The notes under the pieces: generated by a model
The model's database searches: none
What the model was told of the DNA's origin: nothing
Seen by the model: the letters and a program-made list of their open reading frames with translations, nothing else
Origin: Hydrolagus colliei
Taxonomy: Eukaryota
Assembly: GCA_035084275.1 (NCBI GenBank)
Contig: CM068756.1
Coordinates: forward strand, 14,570,001 to 14,634,000
Length of the DNA stretch: 64,000 bases
Reading direction: 5' to 3'
Shown here: positions 688 to 63,935 of the stretch, piece after piece
Layout of the letters: each line of letters begins with the position of its first letter
Position numbering within the stretch: position 1 is the stretch's first letter
Program-made: the position numbers and the translations under genes

Positions 688-1008
688 CGTACACGGTTAA
701 ACGCGATCCATTTCCATTCCCTGCTTTTTCCCCCAGTGACCTCACGGCGCAGTAATAGACTCCAGCATCCTGAATATTCACATCCAGGAGCTGGAAGAAG
801 CCACTTCCTTTGGTTTTAACCCCAAACTGCTTCCTGCTGTCCTCTTCTGTATGTAGGTAGACACTCTCCCCCTCCTTCCACCAGTACACATGGATTCGCA
901 AAGAGTGTAGAGAGAATGGATAGCTGCAGTAGAAGGTTATGTTTGTTCCTCTGTTTGCCGTCAAATGTTTGGGGAATTGACTTATTTCAACGGATTTATC
1001 GCCAGAAA
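688..1008 (-). CDS. Gene A, VJ-type Ig V-domain exon (NKp30-like V)
   Basis: 321-nt exon flanked by ttcttcatAG and GTaagt, phase 1/1. VSGDKSVEISQFPKHLTANRGTNITFYC...VYWWK...DVNIQDAGVYYCAVRSLGEKAGNGNGSRLTVY, with the canonical Cys, Trp, DxGxYxC and a J-like G strand. Confidence 0.9.
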
Positions 1009-1242
1009 CTATGAAGAATTAAATATTGATGCATGTTAATATTGATAATTGGTTAGGGAAGCAAATAAGTAAAAACAGATAACATACATACAGATGCATT
1101 GAGAGTAAGTCAGTAAATTGTGTTTATTCTGAAACTACTCGGTGATAATAATAATGCTTGGATTTGATATCACGCCTTATCACAGAAAAATATACTGTAA
1201 AGTTTAGTCACAATCTACTTTCACCACTAAATAAACACTTAC

Positions 1243-1291
1243 CCGTGGAAATAATAACCAGAACACACGTGTATAGCAAATAACATCTCAT
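1243..1291 (-). CDS. Gene A, leader (signal peptide) exon
   Basis: ATG..MRCYLLYTCVLVIIST+G followed by GTAAGT; 49 nt, phase 1, in frame with the V exon. Confidence 0.85.
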
Positions 1292-1374
1292 ATTTCTAAC
1301 CGCCTGGCGCGACTGATCTGAAGCTGTTGCTGGTCTATAATATGCATTTGCAGATTGATGTGAAATACATTTTG

Positions 1375-1392
1375 TGACGTTTGACTTCCTCT
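1375..1392 (-). promoter_or_regulatory. Putative ETS (AGAGGAAGT) + CRE half-site (ACGTCA) upstream of gene A
   Basis: Motifs lie about 85-100 bp upstream of the ATG and are copied at 7169-7186. Motif match only. Confidence 0.35.
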
Positions 1393-2667
1393 CTCTTCAG
1401 GAATGGTCAATTGGTTAATAGGCTGTAGCGATTTACACCGAAACAGTGGTTTAGGATTGCATCAGCAAAAGCTTGAGAGGCTCGTCGAAAAAAATATGAT
1501 ACGAACAAGATAAAATGTAATCGAAGTTGGGGGTTTAAAAATAACCTTCGCTTCTTGAATCTGAATGTTGGTTAAAGGAAGTCGTTCCCCACTATAATTT
1601 TTGGGATGAATTTTACGAGACACCTCTTTACCTTACAGTTGCGTCATATTTCTCTCTACTTTTAATACATACTAATTGTGAAACCTACTATAAATATGTT
1701 TCCATGTACATATTTCATCAGCGATTTTCTTTACAGGTTTCGTTTGATTGTTTGATTAAATAAGTATTTATTGATATCATGTTTGATTGAGGGTAAAGTG
1801 TAAGGCTAAAACTGCATCCATGTAAACTCTTTAAATACATTCAAACTGTTTTCTAACTTATGGAAAACAGCATATTATTGATTATTAATCCTCTCCTCAA
1901 TCATGGCCCGAACCTGCTTTCGGCCATGATTGAAGAGAAAAGCAGCAATAAATATATTGCAATATATTGTTCTTGATTTCATAATATTGCCACACAGCTT
2001 TCTGTATATCAGTTAGTACTGTGCACATTTATGAAGACGAGCACACCATGGCTGCTTGACATGTTTCATAATGTTATTTGGAAACCATCATTTATAGTAC
2101 CAAGGCAGTGTAGATGCAGTAATTAAGAGAATTTATTTGCTTCTGTCGTTTTTTTGTGGATGTATTCACCCAAAAATACTGTATATTTCCAGTTTGTCTG
2201 ACCTTGGACGGTACAGGCAGATTAACGATTAAGCAGAGTTAACAATTGACATACTGATTTTCATGGTATTATTTTATATTGAATTGCGAGGTTAATGTGG
2301 AGCATTTAAGTTTCGGTGATGTGGCCATGGCTATCTTTCTTTTAATCGATTTGTGCAGCTTGGAAGTAAGTCATTCAATTAGTCACCATACCTACTTATA
2401 TTTATAGTTAAACCAAATTGTGAATTTGAGTCCTATCAATCGTGGTAAAACAATTGTTTTTATTGACAACAAAGATACTGTATAAAGACGAATAAACCAA
2501 TTTGCAGAACAAAGAGTAATAGTGTAACAAACTTGGAGAGGCAAGATCCTGGGTTGTATCAGAAGAGTGTTTAAGATCCCAGATCTCTCTCTTTTGGAAA
2601 GTCTAACGCAAGGCCAAATGGCCTGTCTGGTAGTTTGGAGCAAGGGGAGTTGTTAAGGCGAACGCTG

Positions 2668-2772
2668 GTAAGAGTGGTTCGCTCTTTTCAAAGAGCCGGC
2701 ACAGACTAGATGGGCCGAATGGCCTCCTTTTGTGCCGTAAAATTCTATGATTCTATGATTCAATGATTCTAA
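2668..2772 (+). mobile_element. CR1 LINE 3' tail fragment
   Basis: cgctcttttcaaagagccggcacagactagatgggccgaatggcctcc...(ctatgatt)n, the same tail as the CR1 copies at 26.4 and 37.7 kb. Confidence 0.75.
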
Positions 2773-6577: not shown

Positions 6578-6626
6578 ATGTCAAGTCCTTCGCTATACAT
6601 GTGCATCCTAGCGATTATTTCCACGG
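6578..6626 (+). CDS. Gene X, native leader exon
   Basis: MSSPSLYMCILAIIST+G followed by GTATGT; 49 nt, phase 1, paralogous to the gene A leader. Confidence 0.75.
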
Positions 6627-7007
6627 GTATGTGAATACTCTATCACACAGTTTATTTAACATGGCAAGTAGACTGATCAGCTCCAGATTAAACACCCCAG
6701 TTTACAACAACAACATAATTTTAATTTGTATGGTGCCTTTCACAGCGGAATGGCGTGCCAAGGTGCTAGATAATCAATGTTTTTCAACCAAGCTGATAAT
6801 TAGGATGCGGTGGGTGGAGGGGAGGAGGGTGATCCAAAGTACGATCGAGGACGAGGGTCTTGGAGAAATTAACTGACGTGTCTGTATGTATCTTTTGTCT
6901 AATTTCACTTTTTGCTTCGCTACCCACTTGTCAATATTAACACGTATCATTGTTTCATTTTTTATAGTTTCAATTGTCACTATTAACATGCATTTAATTC
7001 TTCATAG

Positions 7008-7056
7008 TTTCTAGCGGTAAATCCGTTGAAATAACTCAATTCCCCGAATATTTGAC
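7008..7056 (+). pseudogene. Gene X, 5' fragment of the original V exon
   Basis: ttcttcatAG then VSSGKSVEITQFPEYLT, paralogous to A's VSGDKSVEISQFPKHLT; breaks off at ttgac|taaac. Confidence 0.8.
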
Positions 7057-7269
7057 TAAACTTTACAGTATATTCTGTGATAAGGCGTGATATCAAATCC
7101 AATATTGTAAATCCCTACCCAATTGTAAATCGCTACAGCCTATTAACTAATTGAGCATTCCTGAAGAGAGAGGAAGTCAAACGTCACAAGATGTATTTCA
7201 CATCAATCTGCAAATGCTTATTATAGACCAGCAACAGCTTCAGATCAGTCGCGCCAGGCGGTTAGAAAT

Positions 7270-7318
7270 ATGAGATGTTATTTGCTATACACGTGTGTTC
7301 TGGTTATTATTTCCACGG
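7270..7318 (+). CDS. Duplicated gene A-type leader exon (weakened donor)
   Basis: Encodes MRCYLLYTCVLVIIST+G, but the donor is GTGTTT instead of GTAAGT (4-nt deletion relative to gene A). Confidence 0.65.
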
Positions 7319-7549
7319 GTGTTTATTTAGTGGTGAAAGTAGATTGTGACTAAACTTTACAGTATATGTTTTTGTGATAAGGCGTGATATCAAATCCAAG
7401 CATCATTATTATCACCGAGTAGTTTCAGAATAAACACAATTTACTGACTTACTCTCAATGCATCTGTATGTATGTTTATCTGTTTTTTCTTATTTGCTTC
7501 CCTACCCAATTGTCAATATTAACATGCATCAATATTTAATTCTTCATAG

Positions 7550-7870
7550 TTCCTGGCGATAAATCCGTTGAAATAAGTCAATTCCCCAAACATTTGACGG
7601 CAAACAGAGGAACAAACATAACCTTCTACTGCAGCTATCCATTCTCTCTACACTCTTTGCGTATCCATGTGTACTGGTGGAAGGAGGGGGAGAGTGTCTA
7701 CCTACATACAGAAGAGGACAGCAGGAAGCAGTTTGGGATTAAAACCAAAGGAAGTGGCTTCTTCCAGCTCCTGGATGTGAATATTCAGGATGCTGGAGTC
7801 TATTACTGCGCCGTGAGGTCACTGGGGGAAAAAGCAGGGAATGGAAATGGATCGCGTTTAACCGTGTACG
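7550..7870 (+). CDS. Inserted A-type VJ V-domain exon, now upstream of gene X C1
   Basis: Intact 321-nt exon (AG/GTAAGT): VPGDKSVEISQ...GNGNGSRLTVY; 2 aa differences from gene A V. Confidence 0.88.
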
Positions 7871-8331: not shown

Positions 8332-8507
8332 GTCCTGTAGCTCAGTGGTTAGAGCACTTGCCTTATAAGCAAGAGACCTAGGTTCGATTCCAGGCAGGGG
8401 AAAACTTTGGACCAGTTTCCTTACCACACACACTTGATAATAATCCCTCGAAAAAAAATCGTCATTTCAATCCACGACTGTTTGTGGGACACTGCTGTGC
8501 GCAATTG
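8332..8507 (+). mobile_element. tRNA-derived SINE, truncated at the insertion breakpoint
   Basis: Head gtcctgtagctcagtggttagagcac...ggttcgattcc; copy of 56-231. Confidence 0.75.
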
Positions 8508-8574
8508 ACTGGTATCGTGATATCACTGGGGGAAAAAGCCGGGAATGGAAATGGATCGTGTTTAATCATGTGCG
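8508..8574 (+). pseudogene. Gene X, 3' fragment of the original V exon (F-G strands / J-like end)
   Basis: Reads ...SLGEKAGNGNGSCLIMC+G then GTAAGT; the following intron is a diverged paralog of the A-type V-C1 intron. Confidence 0.8.
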
Positions 8575-9516: not shown

Positions 9517-9825
9517 TTCCACCAACTCCACTGGCGATTTCCCGCGGGCTTCCCGAAACAAATCAGTCTGTGTTTCTGACTCTTGTGTGTGAAACGGCTG
9601 AGTTTTACCCGGAGAATCTGAACTTTACTTGGTATAAAAATGGCACAGAAATGACAACAGTGACTAACACCATCAAGCAGCAGAATCTCGGGAAATTGTT
9701 TAAAGCTTACAGTTACACGAAGACACAGCGTGTCCAGAACGGGGACGTTTACATCTGTTTGGTGTCTCATATCAGTCTCCAGAATCCAGAAATTGCCAAC
9801 TACATGGTTCAGCTTCCTGACACAG
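9517..9825 (+). CDS. Gene X, Ig C1-set exon
   Basis: 309 nt, ccccAG/GTaggt, phase 1/1; LTLVCETAEFYPENLNFTWYKNG...YICLVSHISL (C1 motifs FYP, WxKNG, YxCxVxHxSL). Confidence 0.88.
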
Positions 9826-10901
9826 GTAGGTCACCAATAATCTTAATATTATTTTATGATATGGTAAATTGTGACGGGATTGTCTTCTTGTATTAAAGTA
9901 TCTCGGAAAATATAGATACACCGTTAGTGTCATGAAAATATGCTGTAATTGTAAAAGCATCCATATTTGAATATTAAAACTGTTGTATGCCCCCATGTTC
10001 CTCTCTAAAAATATTGACACATTTTAGAATCACATCACGAATGAGTCTATTGCAGAATTAAGATAAAATTACATTACTGTTTATTAGTGAAATATTTTTG
10101 TAAAGTATTGTGATAATGACAGCTTGCATTTATATAATGCTCTCTAAGCAGGTAGCATCTCAGAGCGCTTAACCATGACGGAGCCTGACTGCGCTCATGG
10201 TAGATGGGTTGGTGGGGGTGCCCGTAAGCGCAGTTGATGGGGAAAGTTTTGAGGTGGGGCGTGAAAAGGGGGAAATAGGAGGCAAGGTGGGGGAGAGTAT
10301 TCCAGAGTTTCGGGGCTAAAGTAACCCTCAGAATTAGATTTGTTTGCATCAACCCTAGTGTTTCATACACAGAAACTAATCACCATGATTCAGTTTAAGC
10401 AAACCAGAATAAACCTTCCACATATGCAAGCTACCTAGACGTAGTAATTTCCTCACGTTTGGAATCGAGTGCACACTCTCCGAAATGATATATTTTGTTA
10501 ACCTAATTCCACAAAGGAATCCAATTTTCTGTTTTCATTTCTGCATGTTTTATTCTGGATAGGTAACCTTAGGTGACGGAATTATAAAATGACCTTGCTA
10601 AGAAATAGAGCATAGATAAAGGCATATTTTCTCTGTTTTAACCGTCCTTTCAAAAGAGATGTTTTGTTTTGAATTTGATAATATTGGGGCACTGCACTGC
10701 GGGAGTCATAGAGGACTGCACTACTCGTTATGAATTCTAAACGAAGAATAGTGCTCCCAACTCACCTGAGGCACATTAGTGAAACAAATTACCTTTAGTG
10801 TTCAAAACCACATATGATACAGCAGAAATTATGTTATGTCTTTAAAAGTAAGACCTAACGGGAAAAAAAACGGTTGATCATATTGCTTTTCATTCCAACA
10901 G

Positions 10902-10915
10902 AGCAAATTGAATGA
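10902..10915 (+). CDS. Gene X, putative terminal exon (adds EQIE*)
   Basis: The acceptor cattccaacAG is homologous to the terminal-exon acceptors of B (30587) and C (43517); in phase 1 it gives GAG CAA ATT GAA TGA. Confidence 0.45.
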
Positions 10916-13374
10916 TGACAGACCATTAATTCTTTAGCGGGTGTCGCCTTAAAATCGGAAATACGAACAAACCTTGAAATCCATGTAAGATTTACCAACT
11001 GTGCATATTTTCAACGTGAACTTGAGAAGGATGTGCATGCACATAGAACAAGTACATAACATTTTAATTAGTTCACGTGTTTTAGCATGAAGAATCGTTC
11101 CCTTTAAAAAGTAGTTGTCATTTTTAAAGTGAACATTGCACGTTATTGCGACTATCTGAATACCAATGAAGAAGACGGATAGCAGGTGAAGTATGAGATT
11201 TTAGCAACAATTTTCAGGACTATTATCATATTGTGTGCAACATTGAACAACTTGTGCTTTTATTTGCTGGTCAGACATTTTTATTTACTGAAAGTTTTAA
11301 TGCTTTAGAATTTTTCATCTGCAGCAGCACATTAATTCATATACTCCACAAATTCCACCACAAATTCTTAACTAAAATCACCAATGAGCTGTACTGTATG
11401 CAATTTGGGCTCCATGTAAGTAAACCAAAAGCTTCCACCACGGGATGTGCAGATTGCATTTTTCCGAATGCAACTGAGAAACAAAGTGGAATAGAGAGTA
11501 TCAATGGGACCAAATATTGTACAATTTGAATGGTTATAATGCCTCAGTTAATCCGCAAACAAATGTGTTGTGTTTTACATATGGATAGACAAACACTATA
11601 CCTGTGGTCACTTCACCTGTACATTTAAATTAACAGCCACCTAATCGATTCCCGATGTTGATTTGTCAAATTCGAATGATCATCAGTCCCAATTTAGGTG
11701 AATAAAGAATCATATAATTCTGCAAATACCTGTGTAGCTTGTATTGTACATTGTAGATTTTAAAGATGCTTGCATAAAATTTATTGAATTGCATTGAACG
11801 AAGTATTGTGATCTTGATGTTAATGAATCATTTTGCAATGCTTAGGATTTTAAGCGAAATGTAATCAGGAGCTGACACTACTTTGCAAATTCATCGAATT
11901 AAAAATAACAACTACATGGTTGCGGACAGCAGATAATAGCTGAAGGGGACATTTTTAGAAAAACAAGATAGCCCACAAAACTTTTACCAGCATTTGCTTG
12001 CAAAACAAACGAGGTTCGAGTAAGAGCATTTTTCCTGGAAAATACATGGTCACCACTGCCTATTCTGTAAAGCCCTATGAGAATTCTTCTGACGTGAAAG
12101 ACCCTGCAATATAATTTACATTATACAGCGCTTTCAGATCGGGAGGATGTCTCACAGCGTTCCAGTGAGTTGGGTGGCCATTTGTGGCAGGGTGAAAGTC
12201 GTGGGGCCCCGAATGGAGGAAAAATATAGGTGGGAGTCAACAGGGTCAGTGAGAGAGAAACATGACCAAAAGCATGGTCAAAGAGATACTTTTGAAATGT
12301 GCCTTGAAGGAGAGAGGGGTTTTGGGGGATGGGAATTATTTTAATCGAACCAATCGTAGTTAGATTGCTATATAATTGCTAAAATGATTGGAAAGGCCAG
12401 AGTGCCATCAATTTCATTCCATAAAAAATACCACACAGGCGATATACTCCAATGTCATGGTGTTGGCGATTTGATCTTCCCTAGGAAGCGGAAAAGAAAC
12501 TAAAAAAAACTCCACAGAAAACAAAAGTAACGCTGGATCGGGCAAAGGTTCACCTGGACATTTCCTTCCCCATTCTAAAAGGACGAGAATATTTATCTGC
12601 ACTTATTGGGTGTAACTTAAAAAGAACGTTTGTCTTTCAGCTTTTTTTAAAATAAAGTGAATGTTATCCATATATATATCTATAGCTATATATGAAAGTG
12701 GCTTCCATCGGCAAGACATCTTAATGGGCTTGGCATGCTATACTGTACTGCAATGTGCAAGACTAATTTGCAGAGAAATACCATCCTTAGGGTTAAGATC
12801 AGTCAAATTGAATATAGTAATGTTCCTCAACATTTGTTGTTTTTGTGGTTTAATTTCCTTTGCAGGATTCTTGGACAAGAGACTGAGAGAAACCCCATCT
12901 CTTTTCCAGCCGTGACTTGGGGTTTCTAACATACATCTGAACAGAAAGAATGGACCAAATTCTACCACACCCAAATAACAATTGCATTCATATAGAAGTT
13001 AAGGTTATGGCATATAAGAAGGATATTCAGTCCAATGGCGCTGTAGCAGGGACCATTTGTTTATATTGTTTATATTTATAAGTTGTTGCAATAATAATAT
13101 AATAATCCTTGCTTTTGATATGGTGCTTTTCACATCTTCTAGATGTCTGAAAGAGTTTTTCAGAATATTTTATAAAGTAAATTGACTGCGTTATTTTGTG
13201 AGCAAATTGCAGCACCGAACCGTGCACAGCAGCGTCCCACAAACAGTCATGGATTGAGTTTCCATACATCTAAAAAATCTTATTATTCTTTTGGTCAAGA
13301 TCTGGGGATAAATTTCCAGTCTTCCCGAATAGTATATTTCCATGTTGATGTGGACAGGTAACATGAACCTAAAT

Positions 13375-13515
13375 ACCCCAAACTGACAAAGCATTGTGGA
13401 CCTGAAATGTTGACTCACTTTTACTTTCTCCATAAATGCTGCCTGACCTGCTGGTTGTTCCCAGCGATTTCTGTTTTTGTTTCAGATTTCCAGCATCTGC
13501 AGTATTTTGTGTTTT
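13375..13515 (+). mobile_element. Penelope-like / shark retroelement 3' terminal fragment
   Basis: atgctgcctgacctgctg...tcagatttccagcatctgcagtattttg, recognised from memory as a common shark retroelement end. Confidence 0.45.
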
Positions 13516-13624
13516 TGTTCGCTATACAGTATTTATCTTCCAGTATCTCTCCACTTATAGATTTTTCGCTTTGTTTCTCTCCACTTATATTTAGACAATC
13601 TCTGTTTGAATTTATCTTTGATAA

Positions 13625-13917
13625 TTATTGATAACACTTGGATCAGACTAACCCAACACACATCACCTTCTACCATATATTTTATGTTGCTTCAAACAAT
13701 ATACATATAAACTTGTACCAGTGGCAGATTAGGGAGAGTGGATACCTGCAAACAAAGGAGGACAAAATAAAAAATTTTGGTCTGAAACGTCAATGAAGTG
13801 GGAACTTCTTCCATCTGCTAGATGTTAGAGTCCAGGATTCTGGAGTCTACCATTGTGCAATGATAGGTGAGAGAATAATAGCAGGAAATGGAACTCAATC
13901 ACATCTAATTGTCTGTG
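13625..13917 (+). pseudogene. V-exon pseudogene (B/D subfamily)
   Basis: Acceptor AG>AA, first Cys>His, 5' deletion and in-frame TGA at 13794; the 3' part retains FHLLDVRVQDSGVYHCAMIGERIIAGNGTQSHLIVC and a GTAAGT donor. Confidence 0.88.
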
Positions 13918-14638
13918 GTAAGTGTGTTCGCAGTCCACAGCATGCTTTGGGTAAATACACCCTTTAAACTGAGGTGCTTCATTAATCGTCGAGATCTGAT
14001 GGAGGTCTCTAACCCGGAAATAATTCATTCGAAAGTAGAGTAATGACAATACCCATGTTTCATCCATATCTATAGTCAATTTACTTTACAGTATATTCTG
14101 TGAAGCGCTTTGAGACATCTAGAAGACATGAAAAGTGAAAATGCAAGGAGTAATAATATTATTATTAAGACGTGATAGTTTAAAGATTGAAAATGGTTGG
14201 TTTTAATAGGAAGAGACATTTATACATGATAAATAATCCCTGCTGATGAACTGCATTCTATCGACCTACAGAAATAACTTTAGCTGGGATTGCATATGAT
14301 GGCCATTAATGAAAAGTAAGCGAATAAGATTGGATGACATTTGCTTTCAATGTTGTCATTGTAGTACTAACAATTGTAAAGTATTAGACAGAGTAAATCG
14401 GTGCATTGAATTTGTGTCCTCTGTTATGCAAGATTAATTGTATTTTACTCAGGTGACAAAACATTAAAAACAATTACACATTTGTATTTCTCAAATATTA
14501 GATATTACACCAATCCAAAAAAGAATGCTGATTATGTATATTTGCTCCATCACTCACACCGTGGCTGATGCCACCAGCTATCCAAGAGCAGCCAACCTGA
14601 CTGCCCGCAGTCTCACCACAAGGTCCATCGGTCCCCAT

Positions 14639-18138: not shown

Positions 18139-18288
18139 TCCAATGGTCACACACACTTGTTATCTTTCTACACTACAAAGTTATCTGATCCAATGGTCAC
18201 ACACACTTGTTATCTTTCTACACTACAAAGTTATCTGGTCCAATGGTCACACACACTTGTTATATTTCTACAATACATAGTTATCTGG
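18139..18288 (+). repeat. 50-bp tandem repeat, 3 copies
   Basis: tccaatggtcacacacacttgttatctttctacactacaaagttatctg(a/g) repeated with period 50. Confidence 0.9.
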
Positions 18289-19054
18289 TCTAAATCAGTC
18301 TAAACTGCCAGATAAACACAAATGTGTTGTTACAGAGTCACACACAAAACTGCTACATTCCAACAGAAAGGTACTATAGTGAATGTGAATGTTAATATTA
18401 TTATTGTTATAGAGAAGTTTAGGCAGAGAAAAATAAATTAAAAAATTATCTGATGTTCTTCAAAGCGTAAGGTGACTCAACAACAACAACAACAAAACTT
18501 ACATTTATATAGCGCCTTTCACGTCGAGAGGACATCCCAAGGCGCTGTACAGTCAGGTAGGACAAGAGCAGGGTGGGAAGGATCAGGGCAGGATAAAGCA
18601 TAGTAGGAAAAGTAATTGTATATTAGTGGGCGAAACGTGGCAGCCAAATTGCGCACAGCAGTGTCCCACAATCAGTCACGGAAGTGGGACTAGGGGCAAA
18701 AGGGGGTAAAGAAGCAAAAGGGGAGGGGTCGAGGCAGGGGGAAGAAAGGCAGGAAAGTCGACTGTATACTTGTGGACTCATCAGTTAATTGTCCAGGCCT
18801 ACACTCCAATGCAGTACTGTACTTGTCATGGCAAATGATACATTATGGCATTGTTATCTACAATACAAGATTAGTCCCATGTTCCCATGGCATTATTGGA
18901 AAAGAGAAGGGTAGTGTGGCTTGACGACTAGTGTGAAGTCCATAATGGACTATATGTTCAGGTAGCTCCTCACAGCACTCATTTAATATTGACTGTGTTT
19001 CACTTGAATCAATCCAGAAAGGAAGCCCAGCCTCATGCTCCCACCCATCTCAAG

Positions 19055-20090
19055 GACATTAGGGAAGGAAATGGCATTTGGTGTTCAGAAACACTTACTT
19101 GATTATGCAGAAATTTTGCTATTTCATTAAAACTATGATGTAACAGGTCAGCAAAGGTGAAACATTAAGCAAAAAAAACCTATTGATCATATTACTTTTC
19201 AGTACCATAGAGCACATTGACTGAAGCAGGACATTTCATTATTTAGCAGGTGTCGTCTCACAAACAGAAATGTCACCAAACATTGAAATCTATTTAAGAT
19301 GTATCAAATTGTGAAGATTTTCAACCTGAACTTGAGAAGGATATTTATGGGCATTGAGCAAATATATAACATTTTAATTAGTTCACATCCATGTCCAGTG
19401 TGGAGGGTGCTATATTAATCCAAGTTGTTGTTGTTATTTTCTAGCATGAAAAATCGCTCCCTTTAAAAAGTAGGTGTCATTTGTAAAATGCACATTGCAC
19501 ATGGTTGATGAGGCTTTCTGAATAACTATGAAGTTGGCGGATAACTGATGAAGTATGAGATTTTGACAACAGTTTTGAGGACCATTATTGTATTCTGTGT
19601 AACATAACATAATTAGAGGTTTTATGTCAGAGAATAGTCAGAGGATTTCTTATTCAAATGGCTTGAATGTTTTGGAATGGGTCACCTGCAGGAACACATT
19701 ACTTCATTTGCTGAATAAATTCCTCTACACTTTTTCCAAATGCAACTAAGAAATAAAGAAGCATACAGAGTTTTAATGGGACTAAATATTGTATAATGAG
19801 AATGATTATAATGTTTAGTCTCCAAACAGATGTGTCATGTTTTACATATGGATAGTCAAATACTAAGGCTCTGGTAATTTCTCCTGTACATGTAAGTTAA
19901 CAACCACTAAATCAGTTACTGATGAGGATTTGTCAAATGCGAAGAATAATAAGTACCATTATAGCTGTACAAAATTGCAGAATATTCTATTATCATTAGT
20001 TGAATTATATTATTATTATTATTGAATTTGCATTGAACAAAATTACTTTTGTTGTGTAATATTTGCTAATGGATACTAAATGAATAAAAA
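19055..20090 (+). pseudogene. Decayed TM-exon position and 3' UTR of the pseudogene unit
   Basis: The upstream intron matches the pre-TM intron of B/C, but phase-1 reading gives GGA CAT TAG; downstream sequence matches the B/C/X 3' UTRs, with AATAAA near 20083. Confidence 0.5.
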
Positions 20091-21731
20091 CACATCATTT
20101 TTAATTATCTGTGTGGCTTTTATAGTGTATTGTAAATTTTCAAAGATGCTTGCGTTAAATTAAATGAATCCCATTTAATAAAATATTGTGATTTTTATGC
20201 TAATTTGATGTTTTAGCGCCTTGGGACGTCCTCCCGACGTGAAAGGCGCTATATAAATGTAAATTGTTGTTGTTGTTGTTGTTGTTGTTGTTAATTAATT
20301 AACTCTACAACACTTAATATTTCATATCAGCCATGATTGAATGGCGGGGCAAGCTCAAAGGGACAAATGGCCTACTCCTGCTCCTACTTCTTATGTTCTT
20401 ATATGAAATGTAATCATGAGCAGACTCTTTTCATTGAATAACTAAAATGAACTGACAGTAAATAACAACTTTTGGGGAAAATGTTAGGAAAACAGATAGC
20501 CCACGAAACTCTTACTGTCATTTGCTTGTGATAGAAACAAGTCAAAGAGGTTTGAATAATCACCACTATCCTGGAAAGCCCTATGAAACATCCTTCCAAT
20601 TTGAAAGATGCGGCAGTAGAATATACATTTATATAGTGCTTTTCACATTGGGAGAAAGTCTCAAAGCATTTCATGGGTACTTGTGGAAGGGTGAAAGTCA
20701 TGGGGTTTAGGAAGGAGGAGAGATGTAGGTGGGAGTCAAGTTGGGCAAGTGAGGAAGAAATGTGACCAAAAGCATGGTCAAAGAGGTACTTTTGAAATGT
20801 GCCTCGAGGCAGAGAGGGGAGAGGATTATTTTAATCGAACCAATCTACAGTATATATATATTTTTTCCCCAAAGTACTGGAATAGGCAGAGTGCCATCAA
20901 TTTCATTCTAGAAAAAACATGATCACCATCAGTATAATATGATAATAATTGTTGCAGCTGATATGCAGACTAATCATATTGTTAAGCCATCTCAAAGTGC
21001 CTTACAGGATGTATTGGAAGGTGATGTGACTGATTATTTTGGTGCCAAATGCAGCCAATTTGTGAATAGTAATATCCCACTCACAGCCATGGATTGAACG
21101 AACATTTGTTTTTATTTGGCAAATTGTTATAATAATATAATAATCCTTGCATTTGATTTAGCGCTTTTTACATCTTTTAGATATCTCAAAGCGCTTCACA
21201 GAATATATTGCAAAGTGAATTGACCACGTTATTGGTGGGCAAAATGTGGCAGCCAATTGTGCACAATACTGACCCACAAACATTCTTGAATGGAGTGTCC
21301 AAATCGTTACTGTTTCAGCCAAGATCTGGGGATAAATTTCTGTCTTCTCGAATAGTACTATGGGATATTTTCAAGTCCACGTGGACATGTAACTGGGACA
21401 TTGGTTTAACCTCTAATCAGAACGACAACGCCTCCTACAATACACCACCACTGAGGCAACTGCACTGGAGTGCCAGCATACAGTAATGGTGTTTATGTGG
21501 CTCGAACCCCAAGCTTCTGACTCAGAGGCGAGACTGCTGTCAACTAATCAGGTAAATAGAATTGCAAATGAGACTCTATTCTTCAAGTGGTCAACTACCT
21601 TTACAAAATTCAACCAACTAAACCATGGCTTTTGAATCTGCAGAACCAGGATGTTAGTGCGGCAGATTTCATTTGAAACCATTGCAACCCTACATTAAGA
21701 CGTGCGATCGGTTTCAGTGTCAGTGATTGAA

Positions 21732-21786
21732 ATGATGGCAAGTGTTGTTTTCCAGCTTCTGTGTCTCATTGAGATACTTTCAACAG
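21732..21786 (+). CDS. Gene B, leader exon
   Basis: MMASVVFQLLCLIEILST+G followed by GTTTGT; 55 nt, phase 1. Confidence 0.82.
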
Positions 21787-21964
21787 GTTTGTGTTTAGCT
21801 TATATCCAAATGTGTTTAAAAATATGGATATATTACTTTCCATCAATTTCCAGTACAGAAATATCTATATTTATCTTCTTGTATCTCTCTCTCATAAAAA
21901 ATTTCACTTTGTTTAGCTCCAACTTTATGTTTAAGCAATCCGTGTTCAAATATATCTTTGACAG

Positions 21965-22279
21965 TTATTGGCAGCCCTTTGACCCAACATCCAGGGCTCC
22001 GGACTCCAATTCGTGGCGCAAACATCACCTTCTACTGCATCTTTTCTGAAGCTCCAAAAAGTATACGTATAAAGGTGTACTGGTGGAAGCGAGGAGAGAG
22101 TGAATACCTACAAACAAAAGAGGACAAAAGGAAAATTTTTGGTGTGGAACATGGAAGAGGCGGGGCCTACTTCCATCTCCTTGATGTGAGAATCCAGGAT
22201 TCAGGAGTCTATCACTGCGCATTGAGCCGTGAGGGTATAATAGTGGGCAATGGCACTGGATCACATCTAACTGTCTATG
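21965..22279 (+). CDS. Gene B, VJ-type V exon
   Basis: 315 nt, tttgacAG/GTAAGT; VIGSPLTQHPGLRTPIRGANITFYC...VYWWK...QDSGVYHC...GNGTGSHLTVY. Confidence 0.92.
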
Positions 22280-23050: not shown

Positions 23051-23359
23051 TTTCTCCAACTTCACCGAAGATTTCCCGCAGGGTTGTTGGAGATGAATCT
23101 GAAACTCTGGCTCTTGTGTGTGAAACAGCCGGGTTTTACCCCGAGAATCTCAACCTCACTTGGTATAAAAATGGCATTGAAATTACAACTGGAATAAATA
23201 CTACTAACAAGCAGAGTTTGGATGGATTGTATGAAGCTTCGAGCTCTGTGGTAGAGACACTGGCTGTTCGGAACGGTGTTGTTTATACCTGTCAGATATC
23301 ACATCTCAGTTTACAGACTCCAATCATTGCCAACTACACTGTTGTTCTTCCTGACATGG
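23051..23359 (+). CDS. Gene B, C1 exon
   Basis: 309 nt, ttccacAG/GTAGGT; LVCETAGFYPENLNLTWYKNG...DGLYEASSS...YTCQISHLSL. Confidence 0.92.
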
Positions 23360-23371
23360 GTAGGTTATCAA

Positions 23372-23668
23372 TAATAATAATCCTTGCATTTGACACAGCA
23401 CTTTTCACATCTTCTGGATGTCTCAATGTGCTTCACAGAATATACTGTAAAGTGAAGTGACTGTAAATTTGTGGGCGAAAAGCGGTAGCCAATTGCGCGA
23501 AGCAGTGTCCCACAAACAATGAATAAGCAATTTAAAAATATATATATTTTAGGGATTAATATTAGGTGTGTGGAGGCACTAAGGAAACATGCCCAAGGTT
23601 TTGCCTTGAATTGAACACAGGTTTCACACTTGTGAGGCGAGTGCTCTAACCACTGAGCTACAGCAGGA
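23372..23668 (-). mobile_element. tRNA-derived SINE, near full length
   Basis: Head, body and (att)n L2-like tail. Similar copies lie at about 24255-24562, 28090-28398, 39457-39810, 42045-42356 and 56365-56600. Confidence 0.7.
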
Positions 23669-28537: not shown

Positions 28538-28641
28538 AAATTGACTACAAATTTGTAATTTGCCGGTTCACATTATGCATGTGTCTTATACTGGTTTTGG
28601 TGATCATCACGGTGGACCATTTCAGAAATTTGCCCCTTTAA
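28538..28641 (+). CDS. Gene B, TM exon with stop
   Basis: ttcacAG, phase 1: EIDYKFVICRFTLCMCLILVLVIITVDHFRNLPL*; TAA AG|GTAAGG. Completes a 260-aa ORF. Confidence 0.82.
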
Positions 28642-33792: not shown

Positions 33793-33841
33793 ATGGGTGT
33801 TATTTTTCATTCTCTGTTTCTCATGGCAATACATTCTACAG
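33793..33841 (+). CDS. Gene C, leader exon
   Basis: MGVIFHSLFLMAIHST+G followed by GTGTGT; 49 nt, phase 1. Confidence 0.78.
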
Positions 33842-34042: not shown

Positions 34043-34363
34043 TAACTGATGATACGTTGATCGAGGTAGTACAACAGCCCAAACATGGAATTTCAGTGGC
34101 AGGTGCAAACATCACCTTCAAATGCATTTTTGCTGTCCACCTCAATAACACACGCATAAAAGTGTATTGGTCAAAGCAGGGAGAGCATGGATGTCTGCAA
34201 GCAAAGGCAGATAACAGGAAAATATTTGGAGTTGAAGATGAAGGAATTTACTTCTTCCAGCTATTGGATGTGAACTTACAAGACTCTGGAGTATATTACT
34301 GTGAAGTGATCCGTGAGGGGAGAATCGCGGGAAATGGATCTGGGTCACGGTTAACTGTATGTG
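34043..34363 (+). CDS. Gene C, VJ-type V exon
   Basis: 321 nt, tctgacAG/GTATGT; VTDDTLIEVVQQPKHGISVAGANITFKC...VYWSK...QDSGVYYC...GNGSGSRLTVC. Confidence 0.9.
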
Positions 34364-38566: not shown

Positions 38567-38884
38567 TTCTTCCAACTCCGCTACGGATAATCCATATAAT
38601 TTCCGAAAAATATTCATCTGCTTCGCTGCTTGTGTGTAAAACAGCCGTATTTTACCCCAGGGGTCTCATCTTTAATTGGTATAAGAATGGGACCACAATT
38701 TCAACTGGGATAAATACTACTGAACAACAGAATCCAGATGGCCTGTACGAAGCATCAAGTTCTGTCGAGTTGGCACAGAGTATCCAGAGAGGGACTGTTT
38801 ATACTTGCATGGTATCTCATCTCTATGGTATCAGCCTCCGGACTGAAGGAATTGCGAACTACACGATTTCTCTTCCTGACAGAG
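38567..38884 (+). CDS. Gene C, C1 exon
   Basis: 318 nt, tctacAG/GTAACA; LVCKTAVFYPRGLIFNWYKNG...DGLYEASSS...YTCMVSHL. Confidence 0.88.
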
Positions 38885-42495: not shown

Positions 42496-42608
42496 AATTT
42501 GGCTACGATTCGCATTATGTGAACAGACTACGGTTCGCAACATGCGTGTTTGCTATAGTGTTTTTGGTGATCATCACTGTGGACCATTTCAGAATTTTGC
42601 CTCTTTGA
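42496..42608 (+). CDS. Gene C, TM exon with stop
   Basis: ttcacAG, phase 1: EFGYDSHYVNRLRFATCVFAIVFLVIITVDHFRILPL*; TGA AG|GTAAGG. Completes a 266-aa ORF. Confidence 0.82.
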
Positions 42609-48199: not shown

Positions 48200-49920
48200 T
48201 AATTCCAGGATGATATCCATCCAAACAAGCAGCTACGTCCCCGAGTTGGGTCCCAGTGCAGAACTACAGCCCGGAGTCCCTTCCCACAACATAACTGCAT
48301 CCCGGAGATACTTTGGGCATTACAACTCTATCCTGGAGTTCCCTCCAACTGCAAACTCCATCCTGAAATCTATTCTAACAATCAGAATCCATCCCGGAGT
48401 CCTCTCCCACTTGGAAACTCCATCCCAGAGTCCCTTCCCTCAACTTAACTCCATCCCAGAGGCCCTTCCAACAATCAACCTCCATCCCAGAGTCCTTTCC
48501 CACTGCGCAAATGCATCCCAAAGTACCTTCCCTCAACTTATCTCCATCCCGGAGTCCTTTATAACAATCAAACTCCATTCCGGAGTCCACTCACACTGCA
48601 AAACTCCATCACTAAGCCCATTCTCACCGTGCTACTCCATCCCAGAGTCACTTCCCTCAAATTAACTCCATCCCAGAGTCGCTTCTTATAATCAAACTCC
48701 ATCCCGGAGTCTACTCTAACAAACAAACTCCATCCCAGAGTCCTCTCCCACTGAACACTCCATCCGGAGTCTACTCTAACAAACAAAGTCCATCCCGGAG
48801 TCGCTTCTTACAATCAAACTCCATCCCGGAGTAGTCTCCCACTGAAAACTCTCCAGGATTCCTGTCCCACTGCGCATCTCCATCCCAGAGTCCTTTCCCT
48901 CAAATTAACTCCATCTCGGAATCCCTTCTAACAATAAAACTCCATCCCAGAGTTTATTCTAACAATCTCCATCCCGGAGTGCTTTCCCACTGCGCAATTG
49001 CATCCTGGAGTACTTTCCCTCAACTCACCTCCATCCCAGAGTCCTTTTTAACAATCAAACTCCATCCCGGAGTCTTCTCCGACTGTGCAACTCCATCCCA
49101 GAGTCCCTTCTCTCGAATCAACTCCATCCCAGAGTCCCTTCTCTCAACTCAACTCCATCCGAGTCCCTTCTCTCAACTTAACTCCATCCCAGAGTCCCTT
49201 CTCTCAACTTAACTCCATCCCAGAGTCCCTTCTCTCAACTTAACTCCATCCCAGAGTCCCTTCCCCTTGCAGATGCCATCCCGGAGTCCTTTCCCACTGC
49301 AAACTCCATCTAAGAGTCCCTTCTCTTAACTTAACTCCATCTCGGAGTTCCTTCTAACAATCAAAATCCCAGAGTCCCTCCTGACTGTGTAACTCCACCC
49401 CGGAGTTCTTTCCCACTGCACAACTCCATCACAGAGTCCATTCCCATCATGCAACTCCATCCCAGAGTCCCTTCCCTCAAATTAACTCCATCCCAGAGTC
49501 CCTTCTAACAATCAAAGTCCATCCCGGAGTCTAACAATCAAACTCTATCCCCGAGTCTATTCTAACAAACAAACTCCATCCCGGAGTATTCTCCCACTGA
49601 AAACTCCAGACCGGAGTCCTCTCCCACTAACAAACAAAGTCCATGCCAGAGTCGCTTCTTACAATTAAACTCCATCCCGGAGTAGTCTCCCACTGAAAGC
49701 TCCATCCAGGATTCCTGTGCCACTGCACATCTCCATCCCAGAGTCCCTTCCCTCAACTTAATTCCATCCGAGACCCTTCTAACAATAAAACTCCATCCCG
49801 GAGACCTTTATAACAATCAAACTCCATCCCGGACTCCTTTCCCACTGCGCAACTCCATCACGGAGTCCATTCAGACTCTGCAACTCCATCTCAGAGTCCC
49901 TTCCCTCAACTTAACTCCAA
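48200..49920 (+). repeat. Satellite B (about 31-bp unit)
   Basis: Unit aactccatcccagagtcccttctctcaactt, with perfect 31-bp copies near 49170-49260; a higher-order repeat at about 48700-48990 recurs at about 49540-49830; a short second array at 51570-51652. Confidence 0.9.
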
Positions 49921-59519: not shown

Positions 59520-60005
59520 AATTTAAAGCATTGGAAAGGGTGCAGAGGAGATTTACCAGGATGGTACCAGGAATGATGGAGTTCAGTTATGAGGAAAAGC
59601 TAGAGAGGCTAGGTTTAGTCTCATCAGAGCAGAGAAGATTATGAGGAGACCTATAGAGGTTTTCAAGATCATGAGATGATTCGATAGGGTAAACAGGGAA
59701 AAACTGTTTCCACTGATGGGTGTGTCAGTGACCCGAGGTCACAGATTTAAAATAGTTTCTAAAAGAAGCATAGGAAAGGTGAGGAGAATTTTTTTTCGCT
59801 CAGCAAATTGTTCAAATCTTTGCCTGAAAAGGTGGTGAAGGCTGATTTGATAACAACTTTGAAAACAGAGATAGATTTATTATTTGGAGAGGATGGGTAT
59901 GCGCAGTTATGGGGAGAGAGCTGGGGAGTAGGATTGAGTTGCTCTTTCAAAGAGCTGGCACAAACTTGATGGGCCGAATGGCCTCCTTGTGTGCCATAAT
60001 ATTCT
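59520..60005 (+). mobile_element. Degenerate CR1 3' fragment
   Basis: KALERVQRRFTRMVPG remnant with frameshifts/stops and a CR1 tail. Confidence 0.8.
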
Positions 60006-61047
60006 ACAAGAAGATCATTCAGCCCAACTGCTATGTGGCAGGATGCCAAAACATTGGACATGATTTAAAAATCGTAAAGATTTTTTCTTACATATTCCAA
60101 CCAATTTGGAACTTGAATTTAGCATTCTGAAGAATGGTTAATGTAATTGTGAAATAATTTATTGCAACCTTTTATTACCGCCCATCATGTGTCTCACACA
60201 TTTCACCATTATTATCTTCCAATAATAATTCTTGCAGCTGATATGCAGCTAATCATGACATGCAACTAATCATGTGATTGAGACATTTCAAAGCTCGTCA
60301 CAGATGTATTAGAAGGTGATGTGACTGAGCATTTTGTAGGAGGCCCAGTGTAGCCAAGGTGTGTGCAGCAATGTTCCACTCACAGCCGTGGATCGATGGA
60401 CCAGCTGTTTTTATTTGAGTGCTTGTTGGCTAAGATCCGTGGATAAACGTCATATATCTCAAATAGGAAAATTGTATATTTTCACATTCACGTGGGCTGG
60501 TAACTGGTGTAATGTTTTTTTAATTCACAAAACACCATGTAGATTGAATCAATACTTTAATTCAAAATCTTACAAGTTGACTTCTATCAGATCAACCTCT
60601 TTCCGCTCTACCCCCCAAATTACCCCAGTCACTGTTCCAATGATCCTTTTAGACTTATCTCAGTCAATTGCCACTTATCTCGTTAAGGCATTATGCAACA
60701 GCTGGTAAATTGGTTTATCTTCTAATCAGAAGGACAATACCTACACTGCACTGCCAGCTACAACACACCACCCATTGGAGCTTTGCACTGGATGCCAGGA
60801 TAGAGTGTTTTAGTGTCTTGAACCCCAACCTTCTGACTCAGAGCGGAGACTGCTGTCAACTAATCAGTTAAATCGACTTGCTGATAACAATCTATTCAAG
60901 TGAGCAACCACATTTACAAATTCCAACCAATGAAACCATGGCTTTTACATCTTCAGAACCAGGATGTTTACTGTTATTGGGCAGATATCATTTGAATACA
61001 ATTGCAATATTACAGACGAGCAAGCGGTTTCAGAGTCAGTGATCAGA

Positions 61048-61102
61048 ATGATGGCAAGTGCTGTTTTTCAGTTTCTGTCTCTCATTGAGATACTTTCCAC
61101 AG
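61048..61102 (+). CDS. Gene D, leader exon
   Basis: MMASAVFQFLSLIEILST+G followed by GTTTGC; 55 nt, phase 1. Confidence 0.8.
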
Positions 61103-61283
61103 GTTTGCGTTTAGCTTCTACCTAAATGTTTTTAAGAATATGGGTACATATGTTCAATTAATGTACAGCAAAGAAGTCACTATATTTATCTTCTTGTATC
61201 TCTCTCTCTCGTTAGTTTCTGTTTACTTTGTTTATCTCCATCTTTATGTTTAAGCAATCCATGTTCAAATATATCTTTGACAG

Positions 61284-61598
61284 TTATTGGCAGCCCTTTG
61301 ACCCAACATCCAAAGCTCCGGACTCCAATTCGTGGCGCAAACATCACCTTCTACTGCATCTTTTCTGAAGCTCCAAAAAGTATACGTATAAAGGTGTACT
61401 GGTGGAAGCGAGGAGAGAGTGAATACCTACAAACAAAAGAGGACAAAAGGAAAATTTTTGGTGTGGAACATGGAAGAGGCGGGGCCTACTTCCATCTCCT
61501 AGATGTGAGAATCCAGGATTCTGGAGTCTATCACTGCGCATTGAGCCGTGAGGGTATAATAGTGGGCAATGGCACTGGATCACATCTAACAGTCTATG
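61284..61598 (+). CDS. Gene D, VJ-type V exon
   Basis: 315 nt, AG/GTAAGT; identical to gene B V except G>K (5 nt differences). Confidence 0.92.
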
Positions 61599-61956
61599 GT
61601 AAGTGTGTACACAGTCCAGGTCGTGATTTGGGGTACCTACATACAACGTAAAAAAATGCAGAATATTTATACGTACTTTTTAAGTAATTCATAAATTTTG
61701 TTACCTATGTACAGTAAAATACAATGAGACTTGCATAACAGAGGACACGAGTTCAACGCATCAATTTACTCTGTCTAATATTTCACAATGCGGCATTGTT
61801 TATCTTACCAATGACAACATTGAAAGCCAATTGTTACTAAAATATGTAAAACTCGTTAGCAATCCCAGCTGATGGTGTTTCTGAGGGGCGATAAGATGTA
61901 GTTCTCAGCGGTGGTTGTGTAAATGTGTGAATGTTTCTTGCGATTAAAACCAAATA

Positions 61957-62331
61957 CAGTAGAAGCCCGTTTATCTGTGACCCGATTAACCAGATTGCTC
62001 GACCCTCTCCCAGGGCAATTCCCCATTCCCCATTCCAGCAATCGCAAGTATGCTCAAATTAACTTATTAAACTTACAAACTTTGAGGGTTTTTTTACCGA
62101 TTTTTTACCATGCGTGCTGAAATCTTTATTGGTAAGTAGCTATACAATATTCTGTTACTATTTAGTATATTATTAATATAGTATGTTTTAAAATAAGTAA
62201 TTTTTTTGTGTTGGGTTTTCATTAACTTGACCCCTGATTATCTGGCACAGTTAATTGGTTGACACCCCCATCCCTCTCCCCCACCCCGCCCCACTCCCCA
62301 CTGAGAGTGCCGGATAAACGGGCTTCTACTG
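61957..62331. mobile_element. pogo/Tigger-like MITE
   Basis: Perfect 19-bp TIR CAGTAGAAGCCCGTTTATC; TA on the left, TG on the right; absent from gene B's homologous intron. Confidence 0.85.
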
Positions 62332-62564
62332 TGTTTTCAACTTTAAACTTTCATTCCTTAAGTATTGTCATCAAGTTTCCAATTAACACGTGTTGGAGGG
62401 CTCCGGCAGGTCTCCATCGATGAATGAAACAGATCAGTTTAAAATGTGCATTTACTGTGGATTTGTATTATTAATTAATTTCCATATGATTATCTGGGAG
62501 GCGTCTTATCGCTATTTTAACTTCTGTTATTTGCATTGAAGGAATCCTTTGTTTTTTTCCACAG

Positions 62565-62873
62565 TTTCTCCAACTTCACCGAAGATTTCCCGCAGGGTCG
62601 TTGGAGATGAATCTGAAACTCTGGCTCTTGTGTGTGAAACAGCCGGGTTTTACCCCGAGAATCTCAACCTCACTTGGTATAAAAATGGCACTGAAATTAC
62701 AACTGGAATAAATACTACTAACAAGCAGAGTTTGGATGGATTGTATGAAGCTTCCAGCTCTATGGTAGAGACACAGGCTGTTCAGAACGGTGTTGTTTAT
62801 ACCTGTCAGATATCACATCTCAGTTTACAGACTCCAATCATTGCCAACTACACGGTTGTCCTTCCTGACACGG
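62565..62873 (+). CDS. Gene D, C1 exon
   Basis: 309 nt, AG/GTAGGT; 9 nt / 5 aa differences from gene B C1. Confidence 0.92.
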
Positions 62874-63821
62874 GTAGGTTATCAATAATATACTCTCAAT
62901 TAGATTTAATTACATTCCTACAGGAATATTTCATTGCACCCATTCATACCACAAAGTATCATCAAATAATTTGCGAGAAGTATTTTTGAAATCTATTTAA
63001 TGTAAGAAGTTTTAAATTGTCATTATACGAGCTACGTCAGAATATATTACTATGCAAGTAAAAAAAAGTTTATATACCTGCTATCACCTCTGGTTGATGA
63101 CCATCTCAACAAAACACCCAATATTCAAATTACAGATTACAAGGTGCTAAGATTACATGAGTAATTTGAAGAATAAATATTATGGACTATCCATAGAATC
63201 ATTTTTTCTGTTTGTTTGCGAATAAAGATGAGTATTTTAATAGTATCTTACCACTTGATTTCCTTGTGACAATTTTTTAATGCGGATATTGTTGTCATAC
63301 TTTCCAGGTCTCTGTTAGTTGTGTGCTTTTTCTGATGTTGACAGTTAATTTCACTCTGGTCAGGGCTAGTATCAGGATCTCAGCCTCTGCAAAGAAGTGC
63401 TGAAGGTTTCAGCGTTTTACTGTACTGGGTAGTGAAGGAAAATATGATTCAAAAGAGTTTGCATACACGAGGATGGAAGCTATTACAGTAGCTACAAATA
63501 TCTGCCCCTCTGAAAAATAATTAACTGCAGTACTTCAATAATTACATATTAATCTCCATTCATGTTCAGCTATATTGTTATTGCTATGAAAGGGAGGACT
63601 AATTTAATTTATTATTTGAGGCCGGAAAGCCGCATTCCATAGATAAGGTCACAGGAAAAGAATGATGATTTCCAATAGAATAAATTGTCACGCTTACATA
63701 AAAACATTCATTCTGCATTGTTCAGCTCCTGAAACGAAAGATGATTACAGTGCTTGGAAAATAAGTGAATTACATGCTCAATATGGTGCAACTTCATTGC
63801 TTGGTTTTATCATTCGTTTAG

Positions 63822-63935
63822 ATCTCATTGCTCTGTTCCATTATTTAAAAATCGCTGGATATGCAGGAGGTGCGTTTGCATTTCTGCTGCTTCTCATTCT
63901 CATTGCAAAGCGAAGCCACCTAAGGAAAAAGACTG
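63822..63935 (+). CDS. Gene D, TM exon (open into downstream cytoplasmic exons)
   Basis: cgtttAG, phase 1/1, GTAAGT donor: DLIALFHYLKIAGYAGGAFAFLLLLILIAKRSHLRKKT; no stop. Confidence 0.82.

Follow-up and report, generated by a model that had tools for sequence, protein, structure and literature searches.

Non-rearranging VJ-C1 genes, among them SIRP, PRARP, UrIg and UrIg2, are well known, and so are families of paired immune receptors. PRARP, reportedly described by Fu et al. in 2019, is said to have a non-rearranging VJ exon followed by C1 in lower vertebrates; the NITRs are not known to have a C1 domain. A divergent shark 'NCR3 family' has reportedly been published by the Flajnik and Ohta groups, and Kinlein et al. 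are said to distinguish eight highly divergent shark NCR3 subtypes. UrIg is an elasmobranch gene whose product is a homodimer, and UrIg2, with 9-11 C domains, forms disulfide-linked homodimers (PMC12227049). UrIg has been presented as a novel VJ-C1 gene, in a paper that lists NKp30 and PRARP among the VJ genes of the major histocompatibility complex (MHC) (Verissimo et al. 2023). Here we analyze a stretch of 64,000 nucleotides from the chimaera Hydrolagus colliei (assembly GCA_035084275.1, contig CM068756.1, positions 14,570,001 to 14,634,000, forward strand; hereafter the window), which carries part of a tandem multigene cluster of leader-VJ-C1-transmembrane (TM) organization that is real and functional-looking.

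The 64 kb window contains no runs of N, has a G+C content of about 40% and holds nothing apart from members of this family and repeats; the number of non-family genes is zero. Gene models were built from tblastn with relatives and from splice sites read by hand (Table 1); gene anatomy and domain types are among the things shown here. There are five intact V exons (units A to E), each with its own J-like G strand of the pattern GNG[NTS]GS[RH]LTV, together with four C1-set exons (B, C, D and E), three TM exons (C, D and E), one pseudo-V exon and two V fragments. All modelled exons are in phase 1 with canonical AG/GT at every junction; the leader exons of the units are short and end one base into a codon, and the V exon begins 180-230 bp further downstream. 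In unit E Pfam recognizes a C1-set domain (E 2.3e-13) and a V-set domain (E 2.7e-6), and the models of units C and D are closed open reading frames (ORFs) of 260 and 266 amino acids. An earlier note on this DNA had counted at least five leader/V/C1/TM units in phase 1 between positions 688 and 63935, every intact V exon including a J-like G strand and being followed by one C1-set domain. The phase, the five intact V exons and their G strands stand, and the two positions are the exact ends of the first V exon and the last TM exon; the count of complete units does not, as a C1 exon follows the V exon in B to E and a TM exon is present in C to E only, and the C1 exon of unit A, if present, would lie beyond the left edge. 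No recombination signal sequence (heptamer-spacer-nonamer) was found across the whole window, in agreement with the same note, and a GT donor directly abuts each V exon. The window genes are unable to rearrange because their V exons run directly into this donor, with no recombination signal in the window. The V domain of unit D ends in ..LTVC (34361-34363), placing a Cys at the V/C1 junction as in many C. milii members, and a Tyr stands there in A, B, C and E; this Cys could be an interchain disulfide site.

The TM and tail exons fall into two classes. In units C and D an Arg lies near the outer face of the TM segment (..ICRFTLCM.. and ..RLRFATCV..), paired in this class with a conserved (D/E)H at the inner end; the segment closes with ..IITVDHF, followed by six further residues and the stop, and the tail counts 8 residues. 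Unit E has a TM segment without charge (..IAGYAGGAFAFLLLLILIAKRSHLRKK), and its exon reaches a phase-1 donor where the window ends; a second acceptor in the same frame, at 63822, matches its C. milii relative P0001 (database relatives are referred to by handles of this kind) better than the one at 63726. Relatives from sharks, rays and chimaera conserve both classes. Examples of the short R..(D/E)H class are P0006 of C. milii, P0015 of Heterodontus and P0121 of the white shark, and long-tail relatives have tails of 70-150 residues with 1-3 immunoreceptor tyrosine-based inhibitory motifs (ITIMs; VSYATL, LTYATL, VAYVAL), often also with TEYAQL-type motifs. The closest relative of unit E, P0001, possesses a tail of about 150 residues with the ITIM VSYATL and a TEYAQL resembling an immunoreceptor tyrosine-based switch motif. 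By analogy with known paired receptors, units C and D would be activating-type versions, and unit E an inhibitory-type version, of one ectodomain type.

The relation between units C and E bears directly on this pairing. Comparison of 21435-23376 with 60758-62890 gave 80.9% identity upstream and 83.1% in intron 1, and the V and C1 exons are far closer than that (Table 1); the remaining introns are unalignable. This homogenization of the exons is observed directly, and because the dS of about 0.05 is far below the divergence of the flanks, it points to exon-limited gene conversion between an Arg-TM gene (C) and a long-tail gene (E). The sharing of homogenized exons by an activating-type and an inhibitory-type gene is the classic signature of paired immune receptors.

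The ratios of nonsynonymous to synonymous substitution rates (dN/dS) lie between 0.17 and 0.55 in comparisons of V exons and between 0.38 and 0.56 in those of C1 exons; the intact exons are thus under purifying selection, since the ratio is below 1 in every pair. Conservation of the Cys, the Trp, the YxC motif and the hallmarks of the C1 domain extends over 24 family members. Units A and B form an inverted duplication (52-1437 against 8511-7124, 1.4 kb, 95.7% identity), the pseudo-V exon falls in a block at 10863-13937 that is paralogous to 19171-22300, and the introns are full of long and short interspersed nuclear elements (LINEs and SINEs). The inverted duplicate, the pseudo-V exon, the V fragments, the exon-limited homogenization and the LINE insertions together support evolution of the family by birth and death, as the earlier note had proposed for an expanded, non-rearranging V-C1 family. 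The pseudo-V exon, the remnant of a further unit, the V fragment in unit B and the activating/inhibitory TM pairing are additions to what that note had described, the pairing being the most informative of them.

The family is distributed across the cartilaginous fishes. The best database match is C. milii XP_007902824 (63% identity); the C. milii counterpart that fits best, at roughly 65-75%, differs from unit to unit, and repeats common to the window and the C. milii loci have a median identity of 78%. The C. milii cluster extends over at least 15.22-15.61 Mb on a single scaffold (MU249845.1). A profile search returned 66 homologues at E<=1e-10, chondrichthyan except for one weak turtle match. 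In an exhaustive V-profile search, which was swamped by giant multi-Ig proteins and family members, the single-domain matches looked up by name were all chondrichthyan, bar one unnamed Logan contig; frog NKp30 and other distant named relatives did not occur among its best 150 matches, crowded as these were. Apart from the turtle match and the Logan contig, the profile and exhaustive searches revealed no family-level homologue outside cartilaginous fishes. The automatic names of the relatives contradict one another: SIRP-like is the commonest at NCBI, and the others are tapasin-related, Ig lambda-like, CD276, MHC class II beta-like, B7-H6-like or NCR3 ligand-like and, once, NCR3-like.

Within the family the exons behave as modules. 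V-only genes or isoforms of NKp30-like architecture (P0075, P0131 and P0166) are nested in the family clade; the Heterodontus isoforms P0156 and P0161 differ solely in the C1 exon, one of them being a V-TM form like NKp30, and the Chiloscyllium isoforms P0025 and P0026 differ solely in the TM exon, giving a soluble form. Multi-domain gene models also exist, V-V-C1 in P0007 (S. torazame) and V-C1-C1 in P0130 (Amblyraja), which may represent either exon duplication within the family or tandem genes merged by automatic annotation. Such gain or skipping of exons preserves the reading frame because all exons are in phase 1, and skipping of the C1 or TM exon in the window genes would likewise preserve it. 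A divergent subgroup (P0150, P0155, P0176-P0178 and P0213) comprises close relatives in rays and carpet sharks with a V-C1-TM organization and a Lys/Arg-rich tail without ITIMs; in sawfish (locus L008) an OGFOD1-like gene is found upstream of it, at a distance of about 8.5 kb, and the subgroup may mark an ancestral cluster edge or a separate locus.

What the V domain resembles was addressed by sequence, profile, tree and predicted structure. The reference sequences of human NKp30, B7-H6 and SIRP-alpha were matched to PDB chains; for the other panel sequences the rankings are leads only, and NKp30 was represented by the human protein. The triple-Gly G strand that the earlier note had given for mammalian NKp30 was confirmed for human NKp30 on PDB chain 9fww_A, which ends in ...GVGTGNGTRLVV. 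Against the PDB, phmmer scored the V domain at 27.7 bits with shark IgNAR V, 24.0 with T-cell receptor (TCR) V-alpha, 22.1 with NKp30 and about 22 with PD-L1. The family V hidden Markov model gave 34.7 bits for PD-L1 V, 29.9 for the IgNAR V domain (VNAR), 25.9 for NKp30, 24.0 for TCR V-alpha, 19.3 for SIRP-alpha D1 and 6.5 for B7-H6 V. In hhalign the scores were 53 for TCR V-alpha, 52.6 for PD-L1 V, 42 for SIRP D1 and 41 for NKp30, which had the highest identity in the panel (31%), and the probability for B7-H6 V was 8%. Separate V and C1 phylogenies had been put forward in the earlier note as a check. In the maximum-likelihood V tree (midpoint root) the family is monophyletic (98/96); the next branches are B7-H6/PD-L1 V (91/82) and after it NKp30 with MOG (89/81), both moderately supported, then SIRP, and the V domains of Ig, TCR, VNAR, CD8, CD28/CTLA-4, PD-1, NKp44 and TIGIT lie across the midpoint root (86/69).

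Structure prediction points in the same direction as phmmer. The AlphaFold 2 model of the unit E V domain (61284-61598) reached a mean predicted local distance difference test (pLDDT) of 89, and its top 32 Foldseek matches in the PDB were all shark VNAR (template-modelling score 0.7-0.8), followed by TCR V-alpha; NKp30 was absent among the best 50. The V domain is compact, with 105-107 residues, and in the unit E model (105 residues) just a one-residue bridge and a short helix connect the C and D strands. A model of the ectodomain (pLDDT 85) consists of two Ig domains and the TM helix, and its best Foldseek matches are Fab light chains (E about 2e-16). The C1 domain is, in its tree, a weak sister of SIRP-alpha D2/D3 (86/85), then of the B7-H6 C domain, and stands apart from the Ig/TCR C domains; in hhalign its top matches are the B7-H6 C domain (73) and DR beta2, and its profile scores 48.5 bits with SIRP-alpha D3, a value close to those for Ig lambda C and DR beta2. 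Among whole chains in the PDB, UrIg2 was the best C1 match (5.7e-20 summed across three domains); a separate profile search of that database was swamped by multi-domain chains. The C1 domain is a generic C1-set domain, weakly nearest to the SIRP and B7-H6 C domains.

Taken as sequence and model comparisons, these results indicate a distinct family with a predicted antigen-receptor-like fold, whose V domain does not appear specifically NKp30-like by sequence, profile or fold. The earlier note had spoken of NKp30-type V domains, a description not borne out here, as phmmer, the family profile, hhalign and Foldseek all place other domains above NKp30 and the tree gives the family its own clade. 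Nor is its proposed link between NKp30-type innate receptors and antigen receptors upheld by the phylogenies: its basis is the G-strand motif together with the layout of the domains, because the V similarity spreads over VNAR, TCR V-alpha and PD-L1 and the C1 domain, grouping weakly with SIRP/B7 C domains, lies apart from those of Ig and TCR. The VNAR-like V fold of the model could reflect either ancestry or convergence.

Among the described systems SIRP is close in layout, with an N-terminal V domain carrying a J-like G strand followed by a C1-set domain, and with ITIM forms and short-tail, basic-TM forms whose ectodomains are kept similar. The elements of SIRP-type pairing are found here as Arg-TM short tails in C and D, an uncharged long-tail class in E and ITIMs seen in relatives. 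However, there is one C1 domain per unit instead of two, an Arg with a conserved (D/E)H instead of the Lys of SIRP, low V similarity to SIRP-alpha D1 and a clade of the family's own. NKp30 has in common with these genes a germline VJ-type domain, the Gly-rich ..G-x-G-(S/T)-x-L-x-V G strand, an Arg in the TM segment as in the activating-type units, and the existence of V-only relatives or isoforms; it differs in its organization (V, stalk and TM, whereas units B to E have a C1-set exon), in that ITIM versions exist here, and in that the V likeness is non-specific. Ig light chains and TCR chains resemble the units in the V(J)-C1 ectodomain fold and the split leader, and IgNAR V in its compactness and as the top V-only match, with TCR V-alpha, by structure and phmmer; in contrast to Ig and TCR, V and J are fused here in one exon with no recombination signal, and in their TM segments and tails the units follow the type of innate paired receptors. 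UrIg and UrIg2 share the non-rearranging VJ exon followed by C1 domains in lower vertebrates, but UrIg has VJ with three or more C1 domains, whereas a single C1 occurs here, followed by a TM exon in C to E, and the family has paired signalling versions.

We propose that the window encodes a tandem family of type I membrane receptors (split leader, germline-joined VJ, one C1 and TM) in activating and inhibitory versions, which we consider probable. The V-C1 ectodomain would bind a putative ligand, presumably on leukocytes expressing the receptors. In the Arg-TM forms (C and D) the Arg may recruit an adaptor with an acidic TM residue and an immunoreceptor tyrosine-based activation motif, as in NKp30, SIRP-beta and activating KIR; in long-tail forms of the E type, ITIMs would recruit SHP-type phosphatases and so lead to inhibition. 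Through exon-limited exchange, C and E would stay almost identical in the exons that bind the ligand, and variation would come from gene duplication, gene conversion, pseudogenization and exon skipping. Because the receptors do not rearrange, their diversity has to come from gene number, divergence and alternative splicing.

Several points weigh against this proposal. The window edge interrupts unit A, and unit B is without a TM exon; the C1-to-TM introns of C (5.2 kb) and D (3.6 kb) are predicted by homology to annotated relatives; the ITIMs ascribed to unit E are those of P0001, its own tail being outside the window; and the exact C and D products are absent from the protein collection. For unit B, the search downstream of its C1 exon found no TM exon, homology to unit D returning only past the expected exon position, so that this unit may be either truncated or the source of a soluble product. 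Decay of the whole cluster into pseudogenes without present function would accommodate such losses, along with the clear pseudo-V exon, the two fragments and the LINE/SINE-rich introns, but it is extremely unlikely given five V and four C1 exons that are intact with all splice sites, the closed ORFs of C and D, dN/dS well below 1 in all pairs and hallmarks retained throughout the 24 members. Somewhat less remote, yet still very unlikely, is the idea that the genes encode B7-H6-like ligands of the B7 family, whose layout is V plus a C1-like domain. The automatic 'NCR3 ligand 1-like' names of P0150, P0187, P0189, P0121 and P0206, the B7-H6 C domain as top match of the family C1 profile in hhalign and the B7-H6/PD-L1 V domains as nearest outgroup in the V tree would all be consistent with it. 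However, that same position is outside the family clade, the match of the V profile to the verified human B7-H6 V is poor in both bits and hhalign probability, the G-x-G-x-G-(S/T) strand present in all five window V exons is missing from the ends of B7-H6 V and PD-L1 V, and the pairing of Arg-TM and multi-ITIM forms with a homogenized ectodomain is a receptor signature.

A more serious competitor to a separate paired VJ-C1 family is that the window genes are holocephalan members of the shark NCR3 (NKp30) family reported by Flajnik et al. (2012) and Kinlein et al. (2021), which we regard as possible but would not favor. The common G strand, the top NKp30 identity among the panel V domains in hhalign, the nesting in the family of the V-only members and of the C1-skipped isoform, and the NCBI name 'natural cytotoxicity triggering receptor 3-like' of the V-only isoform P0145 are what such a relationship would predict. 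It is opposed by a V similarity to NKp30 not above that to VNAR, TCR V-alpha and PD-L1 V; by P0121 and P0197, which on their 193.5 Mb record have no covering gene in the chr19 list that holds NCR3; and by the treatment of UrIg as a novel VJ-C1 gene beside NKp30 and PRARP as MHC VJ genes (Verissimo et al. 2023). A further reading, which strikes us as doubtful, is that the genes belong to an undescribed chondrichthyan-wide VJ-C1 paired lineage that keeps a pre-RAG V-C1-TM form, with a compact V domain to which, of all living V domains, IgNAR/NAR-TCR-type V would have its nearest non-rearranging kin, and with V-only NKp30-like forms arising repeatedly by frame-preserving loss or skipping of C1.

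The relation of the family to the MHC was approached by comparing the coordinates of white shark P0197 and P0121 and of catshark P0016 and P0199 with the gene lists that Verissimo et al. (2023) supply for each chromosome as supplementary material. The NCR3-labelled loci of the white shark lie at 101.9-102.3 Mb on chr19 in these lists, and its family members P0121 and P0197 on the 193.5 Mb record. The white shark members at first appeared to fall in class III, between NELFE/ATF6B and CYP21A2/TNXB; this placement was rejected because P0197 is covered by none of the listed genes, a check for poly(A) signals at the listed gene ends was negative, and the chr19 list ends at 115.6 Mb compared with a record of 193.5 Mb. 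In the lists for the MHC chromosomes no gene entry covers the members from white shark or catshark, the match of accession to chromosome being unproven, and these comparisons brought out no linkage to the MHC. Within 10 kb on either side of the relatives, the flanking genes are further family members only, except for the OGFOD1-like neighbor in sawfish.

Table 1. Exons, remnants and fragments of the VJ-C1 receptor cluster in the H. colliei window (positions within the window)
Feature	Position	Strand	Remarks
Unit A VJ exon	688..1008	-	Intact; GNGNGSRLTV; remaining gene would fall past left window edge
Unit A leader exon	1243..1291	-	MRCYLLYTCVLVIIST, phase 1 donor; inverted duplicate of unit B leader
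Remnant of a further unit	6578..7057	+	Leader-like piece 6578-6625 and first 12 V-exon codons 7022-7057; tblastn with C. milii P0010
Unit B leader exon	7270..7318	+	
Unit B VJ exon	7550..7870	+	Intact; GNGNGSRLTV
V 3' fragment	8484..8573	+	Within V-C1 intron of unit B; ..GEKAGNGNGSCLIM..
Unit B C1-set exon	9517..9825	+	No downstream TM exon found
Pseudo-V exon	13650..13916	+	5'-truncated; in-frame stop; canonical Cys to His, Trp to Gln
Unit C leader exon	21732..21786	+	
Unit C VJ exon	21965..22279	+	GNGTGSHLTV
Unit C C1-set exon	23051..23359	+	
Unit C TM and short-tail exon	28538..28641	+	EIDYKFVICRFTLCMCLILVLVIITVDHFRNLPL, then stop; Arg in TM; ends 260 aa ORF; exon type as in C. milii P0006, Heterodontus P0015, white shark P0121
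Unit D leader exon	33793..33841	+	
Unit D VJ exon	34043..34363	+	GNGSGSRLTVC
Unit D C1-set exon	38567..38884	+	
Unit D TM and short-tail exon	42496..42608	+	..RLRFATCVFAIVFLVIITVDHFRILPL, then stop; Arg in TM; ends 266 aa ORF
Unit E leader exon	61048..61102	+	
Unit E VJ exon	61284..61598	+	GNGTGSHLTV; 98.4% identity with unit C V exon
Unit E C1-set exon	62565..62873	+	97.1% identity with unit C C1 exon
Unit E TM exon, uncharged long-tail type	63726..63935	+	..KIAGYAGGAFAFLLLLILIAKRSHLRKKT, phase 1 donor; cytoplasmic exons past right window edge

Between and within the units, a number of other features were recorded. Units A and B stand head to head about 5.7 kb apart, and the remnant listed in Table 1 sits in the spacer between them. 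A LINE reverse-transcriptase ORF (Pfam RVT_1) occupies 36519-37649 on the plus strand, within the V-C1 intron of unit D; an inverted copy at 26359-27156 (minus strand), downstream of unit C, is 95.7% identical, which suggests that the element was recently active, and another copy at 59525-60006 has 79-80% identity. SINE-like copies and minisatellites are also present in the window. The minisatellite at 48262-49919 spans 1.6 kb with a 31/124 bp period and is strongly C-rich (GC skew -0.40), the G-rich repeat at 32301-32900 has a 28-60 bp unit and, on the minus strand, reads as a false ORF that is long and rich in Pro and Ser, and the tandem at 18139-18290 comprises three almost perfect copies of 50 bp.

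We conclude that the cluster is real and looks functional, and that it represents a moderately novel, SIRP-like family of paired VJ-C1 receptors. In literature searches on PRARP, VJ-C1 and shark NCR3, which did not extend to the key shark NCR3 papers, the family was nowhere described; prior description is possible, and we give a minority chance to the paired V-C1 family being undescribed as such and informative on the origins of antigen receptors. The automatic names mislead, and a proper name and placement are needed for the family. Non-rearranging VJ-C1 genes are candidates for the form that the antigen receptor had before the RAG transposon split the V exon, and this family is a many-copy example that the oldest jawed vertebrates have conserved for more than 400 million years, in both activating-type and inhibitory-type versions. 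It also offers frame-preserving modularity, in V-only, V-C1, V-V-C1 and V-C1-C1 models and in TM-less isoforms, combined with an IgNAR V-like predicted V structure. For the cartilaginous fishes, it provides a concrete set of candidate receptors for recognition of the NK type and the myeloid type.

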